A DNA stretch of 64,000 nt from Pecten maximus (GCF_902652985.1 NC_047022.1:22754001-22818000), one strand, 5' to 3'; positions 9,539-63,845 are shown, counted from the first letter of the stretch. Notes: generated by a model not told the origin, from the letters alone. Program-made: numbers and translations.

Positions 9539-12101
9539 CTAGTATCTGCCACCTGTAGAAGAAAGGGTATCACCGTTATATATAAACAACGTATTTTCAT
9601 GTTCATAAATGCAACAAGCCCGATATACGAATGAAAAGTGCTGTGAAGCACTTGTAAATATTATTTTTGTTACATTTTTAATGCTTTCAAATTCATGTAA
9701 AGACAACATATCATAAACTCTTTTACGCCATCCGGATATTTGATTATATATGGTAAACTAAACCAATTTCCAAGGGTAATAACTCTGAAAATGAATATTG
9801 ATCATTATCGAAAGAGGCATCGTGCATACTAAGTAAATAAACTGTTATCAAATCACTATACCTTGAAGAGGTTTCGCACTTATGATACTGCACATATGAC
9901 AGTAATTGCAAATCGATATTTTACGTTCAACATAAGATCTGCCTATACAGAAAAGATGATAATTTCGAGGTACATTCTAATTGTGCATAAAAGAGCACTT
10001 GTCATATTGCTACCCGCGTATAAACATATAATACATTGCAATGAAATACAGTGGAAAAATAACTTACCCATTCCTCCGCCCATGCCTCCTTTTCCGCCCA
10101 TCATACCGCCCATGCCTCCCATACCAGGCATACCGCCCATACCTCCTCCCATGCCTCCTTTACCGCCCATCATACCGCCCATGCCGCCCATTCCTCCTTT
10201 TCCTCCCATCATACCGCCCATACCGCCCATTCCCATACCAGGCATACCGCCCATACCTCCTCCCATGCCTCCTTTACCGCCCATCATACCGCCCATACCG
10301 CCCATTCCCATACCAGGCATACCGCCCATTCCCATACCGCCCATTCCTTTTCCGCCCATACCGCCCATTCCCATACCGCCCATTCCTTTTCCGCCCATAC
10401 CTGGCATACCGCCCATTCCCATACCGCCCATTCCTTTTCCGCCCATTCCCATACCAGACATACCGCCCATTCCCATACCTTTTCCGCCCATTCCCATACC
10501 AGGCATACCGCCCATTCCCATACCGCCCATTCCTTTTCCGCCCATTCCCATACCAGGCATACCGCCCATACCCATACCGCCCATTCCTTTTCCGCCCATG
10601 CCGCCCATTCCCATACCAGGCATACCGCCCATTCCCATACCGCCCATTCCTTTTCCGCCCATACCGCCCATTCCCATACCGCCCATTCCCATACCAGGCA
10701 TACCGCCCATTCCACCCATTCCTCCGCCCATTCCTCCATAGGCAGCTGAAAGTAACAAATTAATAGATACAATAAAAAAAAAGAGTTGCATTTTCACATT
10801 TCATTTGGGCATTATAAACTTACCAAGAACCTACCTAACCATGAATTTATCTCTACATTTTGGTCTCCGCCAATAATTTTCGGGATTTATACTAAAACGG
10901 AATAGGGGATAGGGGATATGACGCCAACAGAACACTGACTATGGCTGAGACGAAACCTAACGATTGTTGGTGGTAAACCAGTCACTAAATAAATAACTAA
11001 TATATCATACAACGAATGAGTCAATACACCAATGTTTACACACCCTTTTCTGATAATTTGATTCGATAGTTACTCTTAATCAAATAGGGTTTGTGATTTT
11101 CAACTTTTATTTAATTGCCAATGGCTACTTACCGCGCTTGTAACCTGGAAATAAAAGGAAAAGTATCAGCCAACGTGCTTTAACGTTACAATCTATCTTC
11201 ATCTAGAAGGTAATGTCATGTTACACAATGGAATGATTGCATATGAATATAACAATTATCAAATATATTCATTTTGCTTTAACACTTTCCCCATTAACGT
11301 TATATGATTCAATGAAGTTTCTATTCTTATGCTGATAGTTTAGACCGATTTGTGCATTTGTGTTAACCAACATGTTGTAAAACAGATTACACCTTGATTT
11401 TATCTCATTATGTGACGTACGTACGTTTTTCGAAAATCTTTTAATTTTTATTGAGCGGACCGCAATACTCTACTGGAAAAATTATCTGCATACATGTATA
11501 TGGAATTGATACTTACGTCCACCGTTGTTCATTCCATTGCCATTGTTCATTCCGTAACCATTGTTCATTCCGTAACCATTGTTCATTCCATAACCATTGT
11601 TCATTCCATATCCTAATATCAATTGAAAATATATTTTAACAAATATTGTATACACATTTCGTATGTTATGCTTAATATTTTAGCAGTAAAATGATGTAAA
11701 TTGTATTGAACTTAAAAAAACAAAAACAATTGTACATCGAGGTATTTTATAGATTCCTTGGTAACTATTGGCGGGGCTTGTTCATTATAATTGATATGTT
11801 TATTATATTGACTCTTTTTATTTATTATGATAGATTTCTATATACATTCTTTATCGAATCAGTTCTAAAGATATTTTAACCGTGTTTATAGAAACCCGAA
11901 ACCTTTTTCATACTTCTTTCATTTCAGTGATATAAAAATGGACATGACGGACTGAAGATGCATTGAAACCAGTACAGGGAGCATCAGACCAACCAAAAAG
12001 ACATACCATGATACATACTATCAACCATATCTAATCCACTTACCAGCAGCGTTGGCAGCGACAACAATGGCGGACGCCATGCATACGAACAGAAAAGTCA
12101 T
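9539..12101 (-). CDS. Gene A: secreted Gly/Met-rich abductin-like precursor, 285 aa, 5 coding exons
   Basis: Coding exons 12101-12044 (signal MTFLFVCMASAIVVAANAA), 11612-11517 (GYGMNN repeats), 11144-11133 (microexon, RYKR), 10745-10068 (GGMGMGGMPGM/GGKGM repeats), 9552-9539 (GGRY stop). All introns GT-AG and phase 1; 858 nt in total; AATAAA at 9489-9484; non-coding exon 1 ends at donor 13942. Confidence 0.88.
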
Positions 12102-19477: not shown

Positions 19478-22400
19478 CGATATAAAGTCAGGTGCTTGTT
19501 GATATCTATTTCCTTATGCGATATGGAGTCAGATGTTTGTTTATATCTATTTCCTGATGTGATATAAAGTCAGATGTTTGTTGATATCTATTTCCTTATG
19601 CGATATAAAGTCAGATGTTTGTTGATATTCTATTTCCTTATGTGATATAAAGTTAAATACTTGTTGATATCCTATTTCCTTATGCGATATAAAGTCAGAT
19701 GCTTGTTGATATTCTATTCCTTATGTGATATAAAGTCAGATGTTTGTTGATATCCTATTTCCTTATGTGATGTTAAGTCAGATGTTTGTTGACATTCTAT
19801 TTCCTTGTAAGATATAAAGTCAGATGTTTGTTGATATTTATTTCCTTATGTGATATAAAGTCAGATGTTTGTTGATATCTATTTCCTTATGTGATATTAA
19901 GTCAGATGTTTGTTGATATCTATTTCCTTATGTGATATGAAGTTATATGCTTGTTGATATCTATTTCCTTATGTGATATGAAGTCAGATACTTGTTGATA
20001 TCTATTTCCTTATGCGATATAAAGTCAGATGTTTGTTTATATTCTATTTCCTTATGCGATATAAAGTCAGGTGCTTGTTGATATCTATTTCCTTATGTGA
20101 TATAAAGTCAGGTGCTTGTTGATATCTATTTCCTTATGTGATATAAAGTCAGATGTTTGTTGATATCTATTTCCTTATGCGATATGAAGTCAGATGTTTG
20201 TTGATATTCTATTACCTTATGTGATATAAAGTCAGATGTTTGTTGATATCTATTTCCTTATGTGATATAAAGTAAGATGTTTGTTGATATTCTATTTCCT
20301 TATGCGATATAAAGTCAGATGTTTGTTGACATTCTATTTACTTATGTGATATAAAGTCAGATGTTTGTTGACATTCTATTTCCTTATGCGATATAAAGTC
20401 AGATGTTTGTTGACATTCTATTTCCTTATGTGATATAAAGTCAGATGTTTGTTGATATCTATTTCCTTATGCGATATAAAGTCAGATGTTTGTTGACATT
20501 CTATTTCCTTATGCGATATAAAGTCAGATGTTTGTTGATATCTATTTCCTTATGCGATATAAAGTCAGGTGCTTGTTGATATCTATTTCCTTATGTGATA
20601 TAAAGTCAGATGTTTGTTGATATCTATTTCCTTATGCGATATGAAGTCAGATGTTTGTTGATATTCTATTACCTTATGCGATATGAAGTGAGATACTTGT
20701 TGATATCTATTTCCTTATGTGATATAAAGTCAGATGTTTGTTGATATCTATTTCCTTATGCGATATAAAGTCAGATGTTTGTTGACATTCTATTTCCTTA
20801 TGCGATATAAAGTCAGATGTTTGTTGATATCTATTTCCTTATGCGATATAAAGTCAGGTGCTTGTTGATATCTATTTCCTTATGTGATATAAAGTCAGAT
20901 GTTTGTTGATATCTATTTCCTTATGCGATATGAAGTCAGATGTTTGTTGATATTCTATTACCTTATGTGATATAAAGTCAGATGTTTGTTGATATCTATT
21001 TCCTTATGTGATATAAAGTAAGCTGTTTGTTGATATTCTATTTCCTTATGCGATATAAAGTCAGATGTTTGTTGACATTCTATTTACTTATGTGATATAA
21101 AGTCAGATGTTTGTTGATATCTATTTCCTTATGCGATATGAAGTCAGATGTTTGTTGATATCTATTTCCTTATGTGATATAAAGTCAGATGTTTGTTGAT
21201 ATCTATTTCCTTATGCGATATAAAGTCAGATGTTTGTTGACATTCTATTTCCTTATGCGATATAAAGTCAGATGTTTGTTGATATCTATTTCCTTATGCG
21301 ATATAAAGTCAGATGTTTGTTGATATTCTATTTCCTTATGTGATATAAAGTTAAATACTTGTTGATATCCTATTTCCTTATGCGATATAAAGTCAGATGC
21401 TTGTTGATATTCTATTTCCTTATGTGATATAAAGTCAGATGTTTGTTGATATCCTATTTCCTTATGTGATATTAAGTCAGATGTTTGTTGACATTCTATT
21501 TCCTTGTAAGATATAAAGTCAGATGTTTGTTGATATTTATTTCCTTATGTGATATAAAGTCAGATGTTTGTTGATATCTATTTCCTTATGTGATATAAAG
21601 TCAGATGTTTGTTGATATCTATTTCCTTATGTGATATTAAGTCAGATGTTTGTTGACATTCTATTTACTTATGAGATATAAAGTCAGATGCTTGTTGACA
21701 TTCTATTTCCTTATGTGATATGAAGTCAGATGTTTGTTGATATCTATTTCCTTATGCGATATAAAGTCAGATGTTTGTTGATATTCTATTTCCTTATGTG
21801 ATATAAAGTTAAATACTTGTTGATATCCTATTTCCTTATGCGATATAAAGTCAGATGCTTGTTGATATTCTATTCCTTATGTGATATAAAGTCAGATGTT
21901 TGTTGATATCCTATTTCCTTATGTGATGTTAAGTCAGATGTTTGTTGACATTCTATTTCCTTGTAAGATATAAAGTCAGATGTTTGTTGATATTTATTTC
22001 CTTATGTGATATAAAGTCAGATGTTTGTTGATATCTATTTCCTTATGTGATATTAAGTCAGATGTTTGTTGACATTCTATTTACTTATGAGATATAAAGT
22101 AAGATGTTTGTTGATATTCTATTTCCTTATGTGATATAAAGTCAGATGTTTGTTGATATTCTATTTACTTATGAGATATGAAGTAAGATGTTTGTTGATA
22201 TCTATTTACTTATGAGATATAAAGTCAGATGCTTGTTGACATTCTATTTCCTTATGTGATATGAAGTCAGATGTTTGTTGATATCTATTTCCTTGTAAGA
22301 TATAAAGTCAGATGTTTGTTGATATTCTATTTCCTTATGCGATATAAAGCCAGGTGCTTGTTGATATTCTATTTCCTTATGTGATATGAAATCATATGTT

Positions 22401-22820
22401 TGTTTATATATATTTACTTATGTGATATAAAGTCATATGTTTGTTGATATCTATTTCCTTATACGATATAAAGTCAGATGCTTGTTGATATCTATTTCCT
22501 TATGCGATATGAAGTCAGATGTTTGTTGATATCTATTTCCTTATGCGATATGAAGTCAGATGTTTGTTGATATCTATTTCCTTATGCGATATGAAGTCAG
22601 ATGTTTGTTGATATCTATTTCCTTATGTGATATAAAGTCAGATGTTTGTTGATATCTATTTCCTTATGCGATATAAAGTCAGATGTTTGTTGATATCTAT
22701 TTCATTATGTGATATAAAGTCAGATGTTTGTTGATATCTATTTACTTATGCGATATGAAGTTAAATACTTGTTTATATCTATTTCCTTATGCGATATAAA
22801 GTCAGATGTTTGTTGATATG
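19478..22820. repeat. 41/42-bp satellite array, ~80 copies
   Basis: Unit GATATAAAGTCAGATGTTTGTTGATATCTATTTCCTTATGY; begins ~240 bp downstream of the gene B polyA signal. Confidence 0.96.
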
Positions 22821-23113: not shown

Positions 23114-24601
23114 TTAGTATCCTGAAACATAATGGTTGTACATGGATTAGTAATTAGAAATACTATACACATAAACGTCAGAACTATCCCTAGATATTTG
23201 AGATAAAGAAATACTAATTGTAGACAGCCCTTATCAATACATGAGGTTGAGGAAGCCCAATGTTTTATGCATTCGGTAGCTAGGTAAAGTATATCAAAAT
23301 GTAATGTTGTATTCGAAATACTTCACGATTTCTTTTAATATGATAAATACTTGAGTGATATCGAAGTCTTGCCAGCATGCAATTTTGCTACATATATCTA
23401 TTTTTAATGTGGAATGAACTTTTCAAAGATGTAGGGATAACTGCTTCTTGAATGCATGCTTAGTGAAATATGTACACGAAAATTTTAACTCTTTGTGAAA
23501 TAAGACCATATATAAAAATGACATATTTACCTTTTCCTCCAAATCCACCTTGGCCGCCCATTCCTCCGCCCATTCCTCCGCCCATTCCTCCAAAACCTCC
23601 ATTACCACCGCCCATTCCTCCGAAGCCACCTTTTCCACCGCCCATTCCTCCGAAGCCACCCTGGCCTCCCATTCCACCGCCGTTCATTCCACCGCCGTTC
23701 ATTCCTCCGCCGTTCATTCCTCCGAATCCTCCTTGGCCTCCCATTCCACCTCCCATTCCTCCGAAGCCACCTTTTCCTCCTCCCATTCCTCCGAAGCCAC
23801 CCTGGCCTCCCATTCCGCCGCCCATTCCTCCGAATCCACCCATTCCTCCGAATCCACCTTTACCCCCGCCCATTCCTCCGCCCATACCTCCGGCTCCGCC
23901 TCCGTTCATTCCTCCGCCCATACCTCCGGCTCCGCCTCCGTTCATTCCTCCTCCCATTCCAGTACCGCCCATACTTCCGGCACCGCCTCCATACCCTGTG
24001 AAATACAGATAAACAGATGTATTAATCAATAGATGTTACATATTAATTATGATACTTTTTAATGATGTGGCGTAAGTGGTATGGTCAATGCTTTACATCA
24101 GAACAGATTGATTTTTCATATTCATATTGCTTTAGCACAAGAAACATCTTTATTTGAAAACATTTACGACCAACTTTGTTTGCAAGAGTTTTTCTTGTGT
24201 TATATGTCCAACTACGTTCCCATAGCAGTGCAAATTCCTTTTCGACAAGGGATCGAGGGATATTACTAGTCAGACTCGATTACATGCCCTAGTGCCATTT
24301 CTCTCCGCTAGGCTGCGCTGATGAAGATAAATATCAGATCGCAGCCAAGCGGAAAGTAGAAACACCTCGACTGACTACCCAGTATATGTTACAAGTTTGT
24401 ACTTCCATATTGAATTCGTATATATAGAGCTTCGCGTCATACCTATGCTTAATTTAAGAAAGAAGAAAGAAACGGATTCATCACGACTGTTCAGGACATA
24501 TATGTTCAGGACAGTACAGTTTAGGACACAGATGTTTAGGACAAACCTGCAGCACTGACGGCGGCAACAAGACAAACGGCAAGACAGATGTAGGTGTTCA
24601 T
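23114..24601 (-). CDS. Gene B: canonical abductin (scallop hinge-ligament elastomer), 175 aa, 3 coding exons
   Basis: Exons 24601-24547 (MNTYICLAVCLVAAVSAA), 23995-23531 (GYGGGAGSMGGTGMGGGMN...GGFGGMGGG repeats...GGQGGFGGK), 23121-23114 (GY stop); 528 nt; ATTAAA at 23062-23057. Matches my recollection of Argopecten abductin (MNAYICLAACLIAAVSAAGYGGGAGSMGGTGG...GGQGGFGGKGY). Confidence 0.93.
24268..24377. mobile_element. Small palindromic MITE-like insert in intron 2 of gene B
   Basis: Ends TAGTCAGACTCGA / TCGACTGACTA with an internal GC-rich hairpin TCCGCT-A-GGCTGCG-CTGAT...ATCAG-AT-CGCAGCC-A-AGCGGA. Confidence 0.5.
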
Positions 24602-25500: not shown

Positions 25501-26494
25501 GGTCACCACAAATATGTAAGAGAAACACATCATCGATTGATAACATAATTTACATCCTTTTAAAATCGTCGCATTTTGTTTTAACTTCTTTAATGTCGAC
25601 ATTGGAATCTGTTAAGATGTCTATATTACATGTTAACTGCACGTGTAAACACAGCACGTACCTGAGAATGTGCACTGCGCTTTGAAGATGTCGATTGCAT
25701 TGGCTTGTTTTCTGTACGTGCTAGTTTAGTGTTATCGAGGATAAACACAATGTAGGGCTGACTTTGAATTCACAGTGTTAAAGAATAAAGGAGGCACGTG
25801 TTTTGCAAATTTTAAAGTGATTATTTTTAGGTTGTTGATTTTTGTTGTTGTTGTTGTCGTAAAAGTTCAATAATACGTTCAATTTTTTGTATTATTTTAG
25901 TATTTTTCATTTCTTTACACTTATAATATACTCCAGGGACGGATAGCATTTTGTTACTATTCTCAACTTAGATCTTTTCATTGCAAGACATCATTTTGAT
26001 ATTTAAATTCAATTTATGCATGGTTATCTATTAGTTTCCAAACTATCCAAAACACTACTCTCAAATTTACTATTATGTCTAAAAGAATATTTTTTGTTTA
26101 TTAAAAACAACAAAGATTACAGACATAACAATGGAACCATAATTCGTGGATAAGGCTATATAATCAGGGGATATACTTAATTTCAAATAATTTTCGTCCG
26201 TGTGTCTTCTGCTTGGGACACATTGAAAGACAATAGTTCTCGAAAGCCTGTTAAATAATGTACATGTAGTTGAATCGGTGATATAGAATTTGTATTTATA
26301 AAAATTACCCAAGTTTCAATTCAGTTGTATTTTACGTAAAACCTATTTCTGATATAAAAAAAACTTCAGATCTATCGAATTGTTTTAATTTGGAATAACA
26401 TTTACAAGTTATTGTATAAAAGATATTTTAAAAGTATGACTCTTGTGATATAGTTGAAGAAACGTGACTCGGTATTATAATAGGTTTAGTAGGG

Positions 26495-28172
26495 GTAGAG
26501 TCGTAGGTAAAGTAGTAGGTAAAGTAGTAGATAAAGTATTAGGTAAAGCAGTAGGTAAAGTAGCAGATAAAGTAGAAGATAAAATGGTAGGTAAAGTATT
26601 AGGTAAAGTAGTAGGTAAAATAATAGGTAAAGTAGAGGTAGAGTAGTAGGTAAAGTAGTAGGTAAAGTAAAGGTAACTTAGTAGGTAAAGTAGTAGGTAA
26701 AGTAATAGGTAAAGTAGAGGTAGAGTAGTAGGTAATGTAGCAGGTAAAGTAGTAGGTAAAGTAGAAGTAAAGTAGTAGGTAAATATGGTAGGTAAAGTAG
26801 AGGTAAAAGTAGTAGGTAGAGTAGTAGGTAAAGTAGTAGGTAAAGTAGTAGGTAAAGTAGAGGTAAAGTAGTAGGTAAAGTAGAGGTAAAGTAGTAGGTA
26901 AAGTAGAGGTAAAGTAGAGGTAAAGTAGAGGTAAAGTAGTAGGTAAAGTAGAGGTAGAGTAGTAGGTAAAGTAGTAGGTAAAGTAGTAGGTAAAGTAGAA
27001 GTAAAGTAGTAGGTAAAGTAGTAGGTAAAGTAGTAGGTAAAGTAGTAGGTAAATAATAGGTAAAGTAGTAGGTAAAGTAGTAGGTAAAATAATAGGTAAA
27101 GTAGTAGGTAAAATAATAGGTAAAGTAGTAGGTAAAGTAGTAGGTAAAGTAGTAGGTAAAGTAAAGGTAACTTAGTAGGTAAAGTAGTAGGTAAAGTAAT
27201 AGGTAAAGTAGAGGTAGAGTAGTAGGTAATGTAGCAGGTAAAGTAGTAGGTAAAGTAGTAGGTAAAGTAAAGGTAACTTAGTAGGTAAAGTAGTAGGTAA
27301 AGTAATAGGTAAAGTAGAGGTAGAGTAGTAGGTAATGTAGCAGGTAAAGTAGTAGGTAAAGTAGAAGTAAAGTAGTAGGTAAAGTGGTAGGTAAAGTAGA
27401 GGTAAAGTAGTAGGTAAAGTAATAGGTAAAGTAGAGGTAGAGTAGTAGGTAATGTAGCAGGTAAAGTAGTAGGTAAAGTAGAAGTAAATTAGTAGGTAAA
27501 GTAGAGGTAAAGTAGCAGGTAAAGTAGTAGGTAAAGTAGAGGTAAAGTAGAGGTAAAGTAGTAGGTAAAGTAATAGGTAAAGTAGAGGTAGAGTAGTAGG
27601 TAATGTAGTAGGTAAAGTAGTAGGTAAAGTAGAAGTAAAGTAGTAGGTAAAGTAGAGGTAAAGTAGCAGGTAAAGTAGTAGGTAAAGTAGTAGGTAAAGT
27701 AGTAGGTAAAGTAGTAGGTTAAGTAGTAGGTAAAGTAGTAGAGGTAAAGTAGTAGGTAAAGTAGTAGGTAAAGTAGAGGTAAAGTAGAGGTAAAGTAGTA
27801 GGTAAAGAAGAAGGTAAAGTAGTAGAGGTAAATTAGAAGATAAAGTAGTAGGTAAAGTAGAAGTAAAGTAGTAGGTAAAGTAGAGGTAAAGTAGCAGGTA
27901 AAGTAGTAGGTAAAGTAGTAGGTAAAGTAGTAGGTAAAGTAGTAGGTTAAGTAGCAGGTAAAGTAGTAGAGGTAAATTAGAAGATAAAGTAGTAGGTAAA
28001 GTAGAGGTAAAGTAGAGATAAAGTAGTAGGTAAAGTAGAGTTAAAGTAGTAATTAAGTAGTAGGTAGAGTAGTAGGTAAAGTAGTAGGTAAAGTAGTAGG
28101 TAAAGTAGTAGGTAAAGTAGTAGGTAAAGTAGTAGGTAAAGTAGAGTTAAAGTAGTAATTAAGTAGTAGGTA
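26495..28172. repeat. 1.7-kb AGTAGTAGGTAA (12-mer) / AGTAGAGGTAA (11-mer) simple-repeat array
   Basis: Direct reading; the plus strand has almost no C; lies between the divergent promoters of B and C. Confidence 0.96.
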
Positions 28173-29407: not shown

Positions 29408-29503
29408 AGACTTCCGTCTCGCACTGTATAAATAGAAGTTGTATCCATTCATTCACCGCACCACGTCTCCAGTTACTCACCCTTTGTCTTCTCGTCCAGT
29501 CCG
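29408..29503 (+). promoter_or_regulatory. Gene C core promoter and non-coding exon 1
   Basis: AGACTTCCGT-CTCGCAC-TGTATAAATAG (29408-29435), Inr-like CATTC, donor CCG|GTGAGT at 29503/29504. Confidence 0.8.
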
Positions 29504-30587
29504 GTGAGTGTTTATATTGGTCTTCGTTCGTTGTCTTACTACAACGTATAGATGATGTTTAATAAGCAAAAAGCTGATAGAATATTATTATTGCAATTAT
29601 ATGGAATCATGGACAGGGTATGGCAGCCATATATTGCCGCTTTGTCCATATTCGATTTATCTTGTGTCCAGAATATTTTATAGACAGAATAAACATAAAC
29701 AGAAAGAACTGATTCAAGATTGGTTTTCGTATGCACGTAAAATTGTATATTTAAACGTTGTTAAATCGAATTTTACGGCACCCGTGAAAATAATTTTTCA
29801 TGACCAAAATCCGTTATATATATATATACAAATGTATATTTTTTCCATCTGGACTATGTTCCGACTCCGCCTTCTAACTAAGCCTTTATCAACACACAAT
29901 CACAGATATTGTACATGTTACAAAAACGTTGATAGACCATATAAATGTACATTTTTATACTTAATGAAAGTAATGTATTATCTTGGCGTGTTTTAATATG
30001 TTTTTTTTTCTTAATATGACGCGACATGCTTCTGAACATTATTTATAGTTTAGCACAGAAATTCATGCAGTTTTATGACACATTTAAGAGTAGTTTATTA
30101 TTTAATGAAACAATCCAAATATCTTGAGACAACGAAGGAAAGTAACCATGGAAATGATATGTTCTGCAGTAGTTGGGTTGAACATCTTGCACATTGTAGT
30201 GGATTTTTTTTGAACTATATTTTAACATTTTTTGAAGACAGTGCTTTCGTCTATATCTGGTTAACTATGTATGTACTACGTAAACATGAAATACTAATTG
30301 AATTAACCTGAATTTTACGCTTCAGTGATTTGTTCAAGATAATTATAATGGTGACAGACGTTCGAATTCAGAAATATTTTTCATTTTTTGTTTTGTTTCA
30401 TTATGTGAAATACTAACATGTGGAGCTAAATTGATGGTGCTTTCAGAAATTAGCATGATATCCATGCAGTACTCGATTAGGTATTGTGTATTATGATTAA
30501 ACTAGAAGAAACGTCCTGATATTTTTTTATTGATATCAACATCAATATCATATGAAGTGCCGTCTCCATTTCAGAAGAAACCCCACA

Positions 30588-32455
30588 ATGAACACCTACA
30601 TCTGTCTGGCTTCATGCCTTTTGGTGGCCGTAAGCGCTGCAGGTAAATCGTGCAATACAGCAAACCGAACCTAATATCATCTTTTTAACATTATTTGAAA
30701 CATATTCTTATATCAATGAATTACTAGTAACTCACTTTGAAGAATTCATGGATTATCTTTAAGACTTAGCGATTGTAAATGTCAATGCACAAATATTTTT
30801 GACAGTACAAATAACATATATGACTGTGTTGCTCGAACTGTACGGCGGAGAGTTCTCATCTAGAATTGGCTATGTACCCATGTATACTATACTTATCTGT
30901 AAGTTTACCAACACTCCGTATCCTGAGCTGATTGTCAAAACGGAAGTGATTTTGGGATCTTTTGTTTTTCTCGGGTTTGTGGTTAAGAATTATGTACAGA
31001 CATTATGTATACCTACATGACATATAAGTTTATTGTACCTGTGTAATCTAATACGTGTATCTTTGACAGGTTATGGAAGTGGATCCGGAAATGGATTTGG
31101 TAATGGCGGCGGAAATGGATTCGGAAACGGAAACGGTTACGGAAACGGCAATGGCGCCGGAAATGGAGGATCTGGATTTGGACGTGAGTGTGAATTGAAT
31201 AGATTGCAGAAGTGAATAATATGTTTTGTGAAGAATAACATATCGTAAGATCGATAAACTAGTATATATATTTAAAGATATGTTTATGTTAGTGAATGCT
31301 TCAGCCGATATTATAAGTAACAGAATTTGCATATCACACTTGAAGCTACCTGGGTATCTAACAAGATGTATGGTATCTATATTATATTATATTTATTGTA
31401 TTAATATATATTAATCTATATTTTGTTTATGAGAATTTAGATTTACCCTGATCGGATTGAATTTTGAAGTTGAATTGAAGTTTAAAACAAGTTTTTTGTA
31501 CAAATTATCAAAAAATATCAACGCTAATTTTGTTCTTTTATTTCAGGATATAGAAGAGCAGGTGGGTATCAACGATTTTCATGTCGTTTGTTTCCTTTTG
31601 TCGATTGAAATTAGGTTTTCCCTATATGTAATTATAGATATGATATCATTATGTGTCAAAATCAAGAACCTTCTGATCGAAGTTTGTACTTAGAATTAAC
31701 AAATGACTCCACTGAAATGAAGGTTATAGTAGCATATTACTGTTGAAACTATTGTTCAATGATACATACGATATCAGCTCATTTATCTACTATCAATATA
31801 AATGTTTACCCTAGGATACGGAGGTGGTGCCGGAAGTATGGGCGGAGGATTTGGTGGCTCTGGAATGGGAGGAAAAGGTGGATTCGGAGGAATGAACGGC
31901 GGCGGATTCGGAGGAATGAACGGCGGTGGAATGGGAGGAATAAACGGCGGTGGAATGGGAGGAATGAACGGCGGTGGAATGGGAGGAATGAACGGCGGTG
32001 GAATGGGAGGCAAAGGAGGATTCGGAGGGATGAACGGCGGTGGATTCGGAGGAATGAACGGAGGCGGATTCGGAGGAATGAACGGCGGTGGAATGGGAAG
32101 CAAAGGAGGATTCGGAGGAATGAACGGCGGTGGATTCGGAGGAATGAACGGAGGCGGATTCGGAGGAATGGGCGGTGGAATGGGAGGTGGAATGGGCGGT
32201 GGAAAAGGTAGTTACATAATTGTCGGTTTTTTATTATCCACGTTTGGCGTTTCTACCGGTTCTATTATATGAAATAGTTATGATATTATTTAATTATACT
32301 ATTTTTAATAATACTTCGATATTATATTATTCATGATGATCAATTGCAGCTTTACGTGCTTTGATTATTTTGTAAATGATAAAACGCACATATTATACTT
32401 GACTTGTGTATTGAATTCTAACCAGGTATGCCTTGTTTTACTTCCAGGATATTAG
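30588..32455 (+). CDS. Gene C: pro-abductin-like precursor, 194 aa, 5 coding exons
   Basis: Exons 30588-30642 (MNTYICLASCLLVAVSAA), 31070-31183 (Gly-Asn peptide), 31547-31561 (RYRRA microexon), 31815-32207 (GYGGGAGSMGGGFGG...GGFGGMNGGG...GGK), 32448-32455 (GY stop); 585 nt; all introns phase 1 GT-AG; AATAAA 32505-32510. Confidence 0.9.
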
Positions 32456-41840: not shown

Positions 41841-43650
41841 ATGAACACCTACATCTGTCTGGCTTCATGCCTTTTGGTGGCCGTAAGCGCTGCAGGTAAA
41901 TCGTGCAATACAGAAAACCGAACCTAATATCAATCTTTTTAACATTATTTGAAACATATTCTTATATCAATGTATTACTAGTAACTCACTTTGAAGAATT
42001 CATGAATTATCATTAAGACTTAGCGATTGTAAATGTCAATGCACAAATATTTTTGACAGTACAAATAACATATATGACTGTGTTGCTCGAACTGTACGGC
42101 GGAGAGTTCTCATCTAGAATTGGCTATGGACCCATGTATACTATACTATACTTATCTGTAAGTTTACCAATACTCCGTATCATGAGCTGATTGTGAAAAC
42201 GGAAGTGATTTTGGGATCTTTTGTTTTTCTCGGGTTTGTGGTTAAGAATTATCTACAGATATTATGTATACCTACATGACATATAAGTTTATTGTACATG
42301 TGTAATCTAATACGTGTATCTTTGACAGGTTATGGAAGTGGATCCGGAAATGGATTTGGTAATGGCGGCGGAAATGGATTCGGAAACGGAAACGGTTACG
42401 GAAACGGTAATGGCGCCGGAAATGGAGGATTTGGATTTGGACGTGAGTGTGAATTGAATAGATTGCAGAAGTGAATAATATGTTTTGTGAATAATAACAT
42501 ATCGTAAGATTGATAAACTAGTATATATATTTAAAGATATGTTTATGTTAGTGAATGCTTCAGCCGATATTATAAGTAACATAATTTGCATATCACACTT
42601 GAAGCTACTTGGGTATCTAACAAGACATTTCCTTGACATTTTTAAGGGTTTTTGAGATTAATCTATATTTGGTTTTTGAGAATTTAGATTTACCCTGATC
42701 GGATTGAATTTTGAAGTTGAATTGAAGTTTAAAAAAAAGGTTTTGGTGCAAATTATCAAAAAATATCAACGCTAATTTTGTTCTTTTATTTCAGGATATA
42801 GAAGAGCAGGTGGGTATCAACGATTTTCATGTCGTTTGTTTCCTTTTGTCGATTGAAATGAGTTTTTCCCTATATGTAATTATAGATATGATATTATTAT
42901 GTGTCAAAATCAAGAACCTTCTGATCGAAGTGTGTACTTAGAATTAACAAATGACTCCACTGAAATGAAGGTTATAGTAGTATATTACTGTTGAAACTAT
43001 TGTTCAATGATACATACGATATCAGCTCATTTATCTACTATCAATATAAATGTTTACCCTAGGATACGGAGGTGGTGCCGGAAGTATGGGCGGAGGATTT
43101 GGTGGCTCTGGAATGGGAGGAAAAGGTGGATTCGGAGGAATGAACGGCGGTGGATTCGGAGGAATGAACGGCGGTGGAATGGGAGGAATGAACGGCGGTG
43201 GAATGGGAGGCAAAGGAGGATTCGGAGGAATGAACGGCGGTGGATTCGGAGGAATGAACGGAGGCGGATTCGGAGGAATGAACGGCGGTGGAATGGGAGG
43301 CAAAGGAGGATTCGGAGGAATGAACGGCGGTGGATTCGGAGGAATGAACGGAGGCGGATTCGGAGGAATGAACGGCGGTGGAATGGGAGGTGGAATGGGC
43401 GGTGGAAAAGGTAGTTACATAATTGTCGGTTTTTTTATTATCCACGTTGGGCGTTTCTCCCGGTTCTATTATGAAATAGTTGTGATATTATTTAATTATA
43501 CTATTTTTAATAATACTTCGATATTATATTATTCATGATGATCAATTATCGTGCTTTGAACATTTTGTAAATGATAAAACGCACATATTATATTTGACTT
43601 GTGTATTGAATTCTAACCAGGTATGCCTTGTTTTACTTCCAGGATATTAG
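41841..43650 (+). CDS. Gene D: pro-abductin-like precursor, 179 aa
   Basis: Exons 41841-41895, 42329-42442, 42795-42809, 43063-43410, 43643-43650; 540 nt, intact frame and splice sites. Confidence 0.9.
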
Positions 43651-52331: not shown

Positions 52332-54190
52332 ATGAACACCTACATCTGTCTGGCTTCATGCCTTTTGGTGGCCGTGAGCGCTGCAGGTAAATCGTGCAAT
52401 ACAGCAAACCGAACCTAATATCAATCTTTTTAACATTATTTGAAACATATTCTTATATCAATGTATTACTAGTAACTCACTTTGAAGAATTCATGAATTA
52501 TCATTAAGACTTAGCGATTGTAAATGTCAATGCACAAATATTTTTGACAGTACAAATAACATATATGACTGTGTTGCTCGAACTGTACGGCGGAGAGTTC
52601 TCATCTAGAATTGGCTATGGACCCATGTATACTATACTATACTTATCTGTAAGTTTACCAATACTCCGTATCATGAGCTGATTGTGAAAACGGAAGTGAT
52701 TTTGGGATCTTTTGTTTTTCTCGGGTTTGTGGTTAAGAATTATCTACAGATATTATGTATACCTACATGACATATCAGTTTATTGTACATGTGTAATCTA
52801 ATACGTGTATCTTTGACAGGTTATGGAAGTGGATCCGGAAATGGATTTGGTAATGGCGGCGGAAATGGATTCGGAAACGGAAACGGTTACGGAAACGGCA
52901 ATGGCGCCGGAAATGGAGGATTTGGATTTGGACGTGAGTGTGAATTGAATAGATTGCAGAAGTGAATAATATGTTTTGTGAAGAATAACATATCGTAAGA
53001 TCGATAAACTAGTATATATATTTAAAGATATGTTTATGTTAGTGAATGCTTCAGCCGATATTATAAGTAACAGAATTTGCATATCACACTTGAAGCTACC
53101 TGGGTATCTAACAAGATTTATGGTATATATATTATATTATATTTATTATATTAATATATATTAATCTATATTTTGTTTATGAGAATTTAGATTTACTCTG
53201 ATCGGATTGAATTTTGAAGTTGAATTGAAGTTTAAAAAAAGTTTTTGGTGCAAATTATCAAAAAATATCAACGCTAATTTTGTTCTTTTATTTCAGGATA
53301 TAGAAGAGCAGGTGGGTATCAACGATTTTCATGTCGTTTGTTTCCTTTTGTCGATTGAAATTAGTTTTTCCCTATATGTAATTATAGATATGATATTATT
53401 ATGTGTCAAAATCAAGAACCTTCTGATCGAAGTGTGTACTTAGAATTAACAAATGACTCCACTGAAATGAAGGTTATAGTAGTATATTACTGTTGAAACT
53501 ATTGTTCAATGATACATACGATATCAGCTCATTTATCTACTATCAATATAAATGTTTACCCTAGGATACGGAGGTGGTGCCGGAAGTATGGGCGGAGGAT
53601 TTGGTGGCTCTGGAATGGGAGGAAAAGGTGGATTCGGAGGAATGAACGGCGGAGGAATGAACGGCGGTGGATTCGGAGGAATGAACGGCGGTGGAATGGG
53701 AGGAATGAACGGCGGTGGAATGGGAGGAATGAACGGCGGTGGAATGGGAGGCAAAGGAGGATTCGGAGGAATGAACGGCGGAGGATTCGGAGGAATGAAC
53801 GGAGGCGGATTCGGAGGAATGAACGGCGGTGGAATGGGAGGCAAAGGAGGATTCGGAGGAATGAACGGCGGTGGATTCGGAGGAATGAACGGAGGCGGAT
53901 TCGGAGGAATGAACGGCGGTGGAATGGGAGGTGGAATGGGCGGTGGAAAAGGTAGTTACATAATTGTCGGTTTTTTATTATCCACGTTGGGCGTTTCTCC
54001 CGGTTCTATTATGAAATAGTTGTGATATGATTTAATTATACTATTTTTAATAATACTTCGATATTATATTATTCCTGATGATAAATTATCGTGCTTTGAA
54101 CATTTTGTAAATGATAAAACGCACTTATTATATTTGACTTGTGTATTGAATTCTAACCAGGTATGCCTTGTTTTGCTTCCAGGATATTAG
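52332..54190 (+). CDS. Gene E: pro-abductin-like precursor, 192 aa
   Basis: Exons 52332-52386, 52820-52933, 53297-53311, 53565-53951, 54183-54190; 579 nt, intact. Confidence 0.9.
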
Positions 54191-62389: not shown

Positions 62390-63845
62390 ATGAACACCTA
62401 CATCTCTGTGTGTCTGGCTTCATGCCTTTTGGTGGCCGTGAGCGCTGCAGGTAAAATACTGAAACCTTTCCTAAAATAAAGATTTTATTTCATTTGTAAC
62501 ACACGTTTAATGACCTAATGAACATAATCTTGTATGTATTTACTCGTATTGACTTCATATTTCTGATTATGCAACTGTAAAATATTAACACTGATGCATG
62601 ATTGCAACTTTGTCCTTGAATATAACGATTCAAATGTTTAAGGACACCATTACCTGACCGATGAGCGAAATTTTCTTTTTCTTTTCTACCTTTATTAATG
62701 AGAAAATCTGATGTCATTTACTTAAAACACAATTTATCGTTTTAGTTTGAAGGTTTGTTCGAAATTAATATATATCTGGAAATATCAGGATATTTCCGAT
62801 CAGTAAATCATTCTGGACATTCTCAATATTCCCATGGCGATGGTATCCCATACTTGATGTACATGACATATTCAATTAAAGAATAACCTTAGTTAAGGAA
62901 CTTTTGTTAAACTCTGTAAAGAATATCGAAATTATATAAACATATCTTATATATCAATTTTAACTGAAATTTTATTACCAACGTGTCACTCAATACCTGT
63001 ATAACTGATAGGTTATGGAAGTGGATCCGGAAACGGATTTGGTAATGGCGGCGGAAATGGATATGGAAACGGTTACGGAAATGGCAATGGCGCCGGAAAT
63101 GGTGGATCTGGATTTGGACGTGAGTACTGTATAGTTACTATAATTAATTCCGAAAGTGTATTTTAGTGGGCGTTTCAACGAATACTATCGGTACACAAGG
63201 TTTCATCCTCCTGATACTTTCTATGGAATTTTAAATATATTCTTTATTTATAATTTGTCCTCGCTTTACTGATTTAGAGTTTGATGTTAAATCTATCGGT
63301 TTTTGATTATGTATATTAAAAATATTTCTCTTGCTGTTTTATTTTAGGGTATAGAAGAGCAGGAGGAGGTGGGTACTAAAACTTCTCCATACTGATTGAT
63401 TTCTTTTGTCAATAGAAATGTTTTTCTTTATTTCGGATTAAACAACATATAAATAAGATTTATATTAATCAACTATATTCCGGTAGAAACGTGTAATTCG
63501 AAATAATCTATATCTTGATTTTCAATATAAAATGACTTGTTTGGTATATCAATTCTGAAATATGTTTTAACCTAGGATACGAAGGTGGTGCAGGAAGTAT
63601 GGGCGGAGGTTTTAGTGGCTCAGGAATGGGAGGCAAAGGTGGATTTGGAGGCATGAACGGAGGTGGATTCGGAGGAATGAACGGAGGCGGATTCGGAGGA
63701 ATGAACGGCGGTGGAATGGGAGGCAAAGGTGGATTCGGAGGCATGAACGGAGGTGGATTTGGAGGCATGAACGGAGGTGGATTTGGAGGAATGAACGGAG
63801 GTGGATTTGGAGGAATGAACGGAGGTGGAATGGGAGGTGGAAAAG
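62390..63845 (+). CDS. Gene F: pro-abductin-like precursor, 3'-partial (last exon expected beyond the window)
   Basis: Exons 62390-62450 (MNTYISVCLASCLLVAVSAA), 63012-63119 (Gly-Asn peptide), 63348-63368 (RYRRAGG microexon), 63576-63845 (GYEGGAGSMGGGFSG...GGK); introns do not align with those of C-E. Confidence 0.87.

Follow-up and report, generated by a model that had tools for sequence, protein, structure and literature searches.

An R-Y-[K/R]-R motif delivered by a microexon suggests a cleavable precursor form of scallop abductins

Abductin is the classical compressible protein rubber, the cross-links and assembly of which are not yet known (PMC9999432), and the biomaterials work on it is still built on a single 136-residue cDNA model. 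The abductin genes of Pecten maximus, the king scallop, clustered on the chromosome-scale scaffold C8 raise a rather simple question about that model: is the elastic chain secreted as translated, or is it cut out of a longer precursor, and, if the latter, where does the cutting site come from? The stretch of DNA analyzed here (C8:22,754,001-22,818,000, i.e., 64,000 nucleotides without N runs, hereafter "the window", with positions counted from its first letter unless a scaffold is named) contains six abductin genes, A to F, and five of these present a short basic motif, assembled by splicing, exactly between an Asn/Gly-rich segment and the Gly/Met-rich elastic domain.

The six genes were recovered by a six-frame scan of the window for Gly/Met-rich abductin-type ORFs (A and B on the minus strand, C, D, E and F on the plus strand), and a search of the species' own genome with exon 5 of gene C added a seventh copy, G, ~16 kb past the window end (C8:22833139-22834531), beyond which no further abductin-type copy was found by that search. 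Matches on C7, C12 and C6 (~30% identity) are other Gly-rich sequences, and those of the gene A Met/Gly repeats at C10:43,873,500-43,877,000 (minus strand, 50-56% identity) are not abductin either; the latter region contains long ORFs of GMGVT/GMGDT/GMDDT repeats with HGYGC units, which may be a satellite-like array or another Met-rich protein. The cluster is also rich in tandem repeats: a 41-bp satellite (~80 copies, 90% match) occupies positions 19500-22819, downstream of B and between A and B, and a 12-bp minisatellite, GGTAAAGTAGTA, is repeated ~142 times at 26494-28172, between B and C, and accounts for the GC skew of 0.76 in the 26-28 kb bin. Adjoining the cluster, at C8 ~22,840,200-22,840,900 (minus strand), lies a 234-aa ORF (58% Gly) for a protein that is rich in Gly/Ser and repeats GGFGGSGG, in the inspected frames of which no comparable basic motif was seen; as loose ends of the RNA contigs of runs X2 and X3 (introduced below) read GGSGGFGG-type sequence, this neighbor or a similar gene is probably expressed in those samples.

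Judged by signal peptide, composition, type of repeat and the AGY at the N-terminus, genes A-G are abductins. Classical abductin, as outlined in two reviews (PMC9999432, PMC13052691), has a signal peptide with Tyr4, Cys6 and Cys10, GGFGGMGGGX decapeptide repeats, ~58-60% Gly, high Met and very low Pro. The signal peptides of B, C, D and E read MNTYICLA[VS]CL..VSAA, with Tyr4, Cys6 and Cys10, and F and G carry variants of it, whereas that of gene A differs (MTFLFVCMAS...ANAA); the predicted mature domains are 58-65% Gly and 12-31% Met, with GGFGGMNGGG or GGKGGFGGM repeats.

Gene C illustrates the plan of six of the seven genes (A, C, D, E, F and G), in which a microexon sits between the Asn/Gly-rich exon and the Gly/Met repeat exon. 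Its exon 1 (29473-29503) is 5′UTR, with a TATA box at 29428; exon 2 (30575-30642) carries the ATG at 30588 and the signal peptide MNTYICLASCLLVAVSA|A, ending in phase 1; exon 3 (31070-31183, 114 nt) encodes the Asn/Gly-rich pro-segment, and its final base, C, is the first base of a split Arg codon; exon 4 is the microexon (31547-31561, 15 nt), GATATAGAAGAGCAG, which has AG/GT borders and translates as (R)-Y-R-R-A-(G); exon 5 (31815-32207) begins with (A)GYGGGAGSM, followed by GGFGGMNGGG-type elastomer repeats; and exon 6, the last coding one (32448-32455), supplies (G)-Y-stop. Genes D and E are near-identical copies of C, with the same microexon sequence at 42795-42809 (flanking exons 42329-42442 and 43063-43410) and 53297-53311 (flanking exons 52820-52933 and 53565-53951), respectively, and F and G follow C's plan. 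In F, the microexon (63348-63368, 21 nt, encoding (R)-Y-R-R-A-G-G with the split codon C|GG) is flanked by exons 63012-63119 and 63576-63845, and the last exon falls outside the window; G consists of a signal peptide, a 108-nt N/G exon, a 15-nt microexon and a repeat exon, with the split codon A|GA, and it also has one additional Arg (GYRNG), while its pro-segment and repeats bear acidic substitutions. With C, D and E counted once, as recent duplicates, there are four independent lineages (A, C-E, F and G).

Gene A, on the minus strand, follows the plan of C, though its repeats are unrelated; it has a signal-peptide exon (MTFLFVCMASAIVVAANA|A; 12044-12101), a 96-nt pro-segment exon of (GYGMNN)n repeats (11517-11612), a 12-nt microexon, GTTACAAGCGCG, encoding (R)-Y-K-R-(A) with the split codon C|GT (11133-11144), a repeat exon beginning with (A)AYGGMGGG (10068-10745; 31% Met, no Phe) that encodes a Phe-free, Pro-containing MGGMPGMGMGG elastomer, and a terminal exon for GGRY-stop (9552-9539). 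Gene B, also on the minus strand, has neither the pro-segment exon nor the microexon, its signal-peptide exon (24547-24601) being spliced over a ~550-nt intron straight to the repeat exon (23995-23531). The pro-segment is of the N/G-rich type in A and C-G, with differing repeats, and because A, divergent in both signal peptide and repeats, has this architecture in common with C-G, parsimony would make the pro-segment ancestral and lost from B by an in-frame deletion of two phase-1 exons. All introns are of phase 1 and every internal exon length is divisible by three (exon 3/microexon/exon 5, nt: A, 96/12/678; C, 114/15/393; D, 114/15/348; E, 114/15/387; F, 108/21/270); the concatenated models of A-E and G have no internal stop, A-E terminate in a stop, and F, translated exon by exon, reads RYRR. 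Tiny last coding exons for (G)-Y-stop are seen in C (32448-32455), D (43643-43650), E (54183-54190) and B (23114-23121, minus strand), and, as every gene has such a tiny last exon, the C-terminal Tyr is likewise delivered by a phase-1 exon of its own. At the other end, C, D and E have a common short 5′UTR exon (29428-29503, 40841- and 51187-) that precedes the ATG exon by ~1.07 kb; a TATAAATA box stands ~30 nt ahead of the likely start.

All five microexons that the first-pass annotation had called in the window were thus located; each has a polypyrimidine tract in front of its AG acceptor, a GT donor, and a length (12, 15 or 21 nt) that preserves the frame and stays below the 30-nt limit for microexons. 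Of the corollary in that annotation that five paralogs bear the motif, the count within the window stands, the total being raised to six by G, outside of it; the start of gene C exon 5 had to be corrected, to 31815.

Are these microexons actually spliced in? Logan contigs of three RNA runs labeled as this species (X1, X2 and X3) were compared with positions 30560-31900 of the window, and within that interval the contigs cover exons only, exon 3 being covered by all three runs. In X1 and X3, contigs run from 30642 straight on to 31070, a GT..AG intron being removed, and in X1 and X2, which belong to separate studies, they connect 31184 with 31813 through ATATAGAAGAGC; the aligner had placed one G and one AG of the insert into the flanks of ATATAGAAGAGC, and the full insert is the 15-nt microexon. 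Loose 5′ ends of the RNA contigs match the C/D/E 5′UTR exon exactly. Given the exon-only coverage, the GT..AG joints and the matching 5′UTR ends, the X1-X3 records are spliced cDNA, and the microexon of the C/D/E type is included in mRNA, so that the transcript check across exons 3-4-5 called for at the outset came out in favor of the microexon in two studies. No microexon-skipping joint was seen in the contigs of X1-X3, from which minor isoforms may escape. RNA inclusion pertains to the C/D/E type; the microexons of A (12 nt) and F (21 nt) are based on splice signals, frame and conservation. One X3 contig has 6 nt missing at position 31122, in C exon 3, equal to one Gly-Asn unit of the pro-segment; the resulting exon is 108 nt long, as in F and G, and represents an allele or a paralogue with another repeat number.

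What inclusion of the microexon brings about is the sequence R-Y-[K/R]-R-A, the first Arg codon of which is split across the junction. The junction reads ...NNGG-R-Y-K-R-A-A-Y-G-G-M in gene A (split P4 Arg C|GT), ...GFG-R-Y-R-R-A-G-Y-G-G-G-A-G-S-M in C-E (C|GA), ...GFG-R-Y-R-R-A-G-G-G-Y-E-G-G-A-G-S-M in F (C|GG) and ...GFG-R-Y-R-R-A-G-Y-G-G-G in G (A|GA, a fourth synonymous Arg codon); an uncut chain would read ...GFGRYRRAGYGGG... across the site, and in C-E, the pro-segment of which contains no Met, the site-spanning stretch of such a chain is ...GFGRYRRAGYGGGAGSM. Exactly one R-x-[KR]-R occurs in each of A, C, D, E and G, and the three Arg of C-F, in ~195 residues, all lie within the motif, an arrangement that three randomly placed Arg would produce as R-x-R-R in 192 of 1,216,865 placements (~1.6e-4 per gene), so that the pattern is not due to chance.

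The way the motif has been retained is just as telling. Between A and C, 7 of the 15 nt in the codons for R-Y-basic-R-A differ (CGT TAC AAG CGC GCT vs. CGA TAT AGA AGA GCA), with four of the five residues identical and the fifth a Lys/Arg exchange, and there is no alignable DNA between the two genes outside the repeat exon. When C, D, E, F and G are aligned from exon 3 to exon 5, three conserved islands stand out (the exon 3 end, the microexon with its polypyrimidine tract, and the exon 5 start) from introns that are otherwise unalignable; even C and G, the introns of which do not align, are identical over 28/28 nt of microexon and acceptor (blastn). As four different P4 Arg codons are used and the residues are kept despite the 7/15 nt difference between A and C, the motif is, on the comparison of these paralogs of one genome, under selection at the protein level in four lineages. 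Searches of protein libraries with exon 5 and with the exon-3 region, and a full HMMER scan of 1.84 billion representatives, returned unrelated low-complexity proteins or nothing, but since they missed even the window's own products, this blank says nothing on conservation elsewhere. Thus, most of what had been claimed of the motif holds: it exists only after splicing, with the split codons C|GT (A), C|GA (C-E) and C|GG (F) all as described; it is kept between A and C-F in different codons and amid introns without alignment; and all copies, A and C-G, are of the R-X-[K/R]-R type.

That type is the consensus of furin-like enzymes, and the copies fit it as RYKR|AA (A), RYRR|AG (C-E and G) and RYRR|AGG (F); the motif also obeys the dibasic KR/RR rule. 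The P1′ residue is Ala, in keeping with the rule against bulky or aliphatic residues there, and P2′ is Gly (Ala in gene A). Both flanks are of Gly/Asn/Ser low complexity, a composition that, along with the random coil that the literature sees in abductin, suggests a flexible context. Every copy has a signal peptide, judged by rule from a hydrophobic N-terminus and small residues at -3 and -1 (VSA|A, ANA|A, VGA|A), and six loci of the genome match the convertase P-domain PF01483 above the cut-off. The strongest point from context is that the residues that follow the motif in C-E and G, AGYGGGAGSMGG, equal, residue for residue, the N-terminus predicted for B after signal peptide removal, as the first-pass annotation had pointed out for AGYGGGAGSM of C-E and the VSA|A site of B, and AGYGGGAGSMGG is written with synonymous codon differences in C-E/G and B. 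A convertase cut would therefore recreate the canonical abductin N-terminus, although this conservation of AGY... could also reflect simple common descent of exon 5; the P1′ Ala itself comes from the microexon end ...GCAG, which resembles the signal exon end ...GCTGCAG. Conserved and spliced in through AG/GT borders, the R-Y-[K/R]-R between leader and elastic domain suggests that the A and C-G proteins are probably made as cut precursors, and we lean, with moderate confidence, towards the site being cleaved in vivo by a furin-type convertase.

The scheme would then be as follows. Six of the seven abductin genes would encode pre-pro-proteins composed of a signal peptide, an Asn/Gly-rich pro-segment of 37-43 residues, R-Y-[K/R]-R and the Gly/Met elastomer, with the motif carried by a phase-1 microexon that would be spliced constitutively. 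Signal peptidase would make the first cut, at (V-S/A-N/V-G)-A|A-G-Y, and the second, behind R-Y-[K/R]-R, would be the work of a furin-type proprotein convertase within the secretory pathway of the mantle epithelium that secretes the ligament. From C-E and G, this would yield an elastomer with the canonical N-terminus A-G-Y-G-G-G-A-G-S-M, the products of F and A would start with AGGGYEGGAGSM and A-A-Y-G-G-M, respectively, and a separate Asn/Gly-rich peptide would be released too. Basic residues are usually trimmed by a carboxypeptidase after convertase cleavage, and such trimming would leave a pro-segment peptide ending in ...G-R-Y. The elastomers end in ...K-G-Y (B-F) or ...G-G-R-Y (A), and Tyr is found in the mature domains solely at position 3 and the last position; with the trimmed ...G-R-Y end and a Tyr near its N-terminus, the peptide would be a Tyr-capped chain just as the elastomer chains are. 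Two such products would fit the older speculation on terminal Tyr as cross-link sites. As for the pro-segment itself, its role might lie in, e.g., assembly control or solubility, if it were to keep the hydrophobic Gly/Met/Phe domain in solution up to secretion.

The P3 Tyr is, however, where precursor cleavage meets its main rival. This residue is as conserved as the basic ones, though a convertase does not require it, which hints that the motif may serve another role, additionally or instead: R-Y-[K/R]-R might stay uncut between the two low-complexity domains of a single chain and work there permanently as a cationic/aromatic "sticker" or a cross-link node, through Arg-Tyr cation-pi coacervation, as a charge-flanked Tyr cross-link site, or by anchoring the chain to mineral or anionic matrix. 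Elsewhere in the protein, Tyr is found just at the chain ends, where reviews speculate that the terminal Tyr residues are cross-link sites, gene A also terminates in ...GGRY, and in the shematrins basic residues plus Tyr (RKKKY/RRKKY) form a tail that looks functional (PMC3896809), all of which makes the uncut chain a possibility to be reckoned with, if a rather unlikely one. It leaves unexplained, however, the exact R-x-[K/R]-R spacing with P1′ Ala in all lineages, as well as the copy of B's signal-peptidase N-terminus right after the motif, and one such element per ~195 residues would do little to drive phase separation.

Should the precursors indeed be cut, a bolder extension can be entertained, which we consider unlikely at present: that of a two-chain polyprotein giving rise, by convertase cleavage and carboxypeptidase trimming, to two "telechelic" chains, one Asn/Gly-rich (~35-41 residues) and the other the Gly/Met elastomer, joined into a hinge rubber that is an end-linked network. 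The Asn/Gly peptide would then not be thrown away as a propeptide but take part in the structure, whether as co-monomer, cross-linker or plasticiser, in a network to which B genes would supply the elastomer alone, thereby tuning the mix.

A further question is whether the meaning of the microexon might lie in its regulated inclusion, by tissue or stage, and not in constitutive processing. The gene structure would certainly permit such a switch, as all internal exons are divisible by three and all introns are of phase 1; the signal exon and the microexon both end in ...GCAG, so that exon 5 reads A-G-Y after either, and B proves the short architecture to be viable. Skipping of exons 3 and 4 would turn C-G into a B-type protein, and skipping of exon 4 alone would give ...GFG-R-YGGG. 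Yet the only joints recovered were exon 2-exon 3 and exon 3-microexon-exon 5, with no skipped form in three runs (rare variants may drop from contigs), and the strong, conserved polypyrimidine tract at the acceptor is typical of constitutive use; regulated inclusion appears, therefore, improbable, and it would in any case be compatible with cleavage instead of replacing it. More doubtful still, and speculative, is the notion that cleavage serves to set free the Asn/Gly-rich peptide for a function of its own (e.g., as a glycine-rich antimicrobial or mineral-interacting peptide) with the abductin domain as its carrier, for although the layout, in which a short peptide lies between the signal peptide and a dibasic site and the larger protein comes last, is peptide-precursor-like and the repetitive N/G-rich type is kept in A and C-G, the protein-library searches found no homology to known peptide families, and the segment has no net charge outside the motif, unlike most antimicrobial peptides.

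If most abductin genes do encode cleavable pro-forms, recombinant and biomimetic designs miss a maturation step, the ligament may hold a second, Asn/Gly-rich component, and the idea of cross-linking through Tyr at both ends gains a concrete test in the predicted neo-termini AGY... and ...GRY. The microexon, for its part, would be a clean example of an exon that contains a processing site and nothing else, the site being made complete by a junction-split codon.

How does this compare with what is already known? The published Argopecten abductin, as the reviews give it, has Tyr20 straight after a 19-residue signal peptide (PMC9999432, PMC13052691). Its layout is matched by gene B, and exon 5 of C-G has the same AGY... 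start and repeats; per the review summaries, however, it is without an Asn/Gly pro-segment and without a basic motif, whereas in A and C-G a stretch of 37-43 residues, followed by R-Y-[K/R]-R, separates the signal peptide from the AGY start. No gene family, propeptide or convertase site is described in the titles and abstract openings of the 31 papers that mention abductin or in the two reviews (PMC9999432, PMC13052691).

Among matrix proteins of molluscs, Pif177 of pearl-oyster nacre is described as giving rise to Pif97 and Pif80 through a cut at a dibasic site (PMC13190495, citing Suzuki et al. 2009). It is likewise a mantle-secreted matrix precursor from which a cut at a basic site makes two matrix components, with the difference that its cleavage is experimentally established and that of the abductins predicted, and that the sequences and domains are unrelated (VWA and chitin-binding in Pif177 vs. 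low complexity here). The cleavage site of Pif177 is not known to be borne by a microexon. In vertebrates, furin processing is found in elastic-fibre proteins, such as profibrillin-1, where an R-X-K/R-R site lies between the propeptide and the part that polymerises, and where incorporation into the matrix is linked to the cut; profibrillin-1 differs from the abductins, to which it has no homology, in its folded domains and C-terminal processing. The shematrins, Gly-rich framework proteins of the Pinctada shell, end in RKKKY/RRKKY/RRRKY (PMC3896809). These are likewise Gly-rich, secreted and of low complexity, and abductin chains end in K-G-Y or G-R-Y, as the trimmed pro-segment would in G-R-Y, but shematrin repeats are GnY as opposed to GGFGGMNGGG, and their basic-Tyr motif is a true C-terminus, the one here being internal, which makes the resemblance a lead. 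As dibasic and furin processing of matrix precursors is already known, what these genes would add is not a new principle but a new case of it, a pro-form of abductin.
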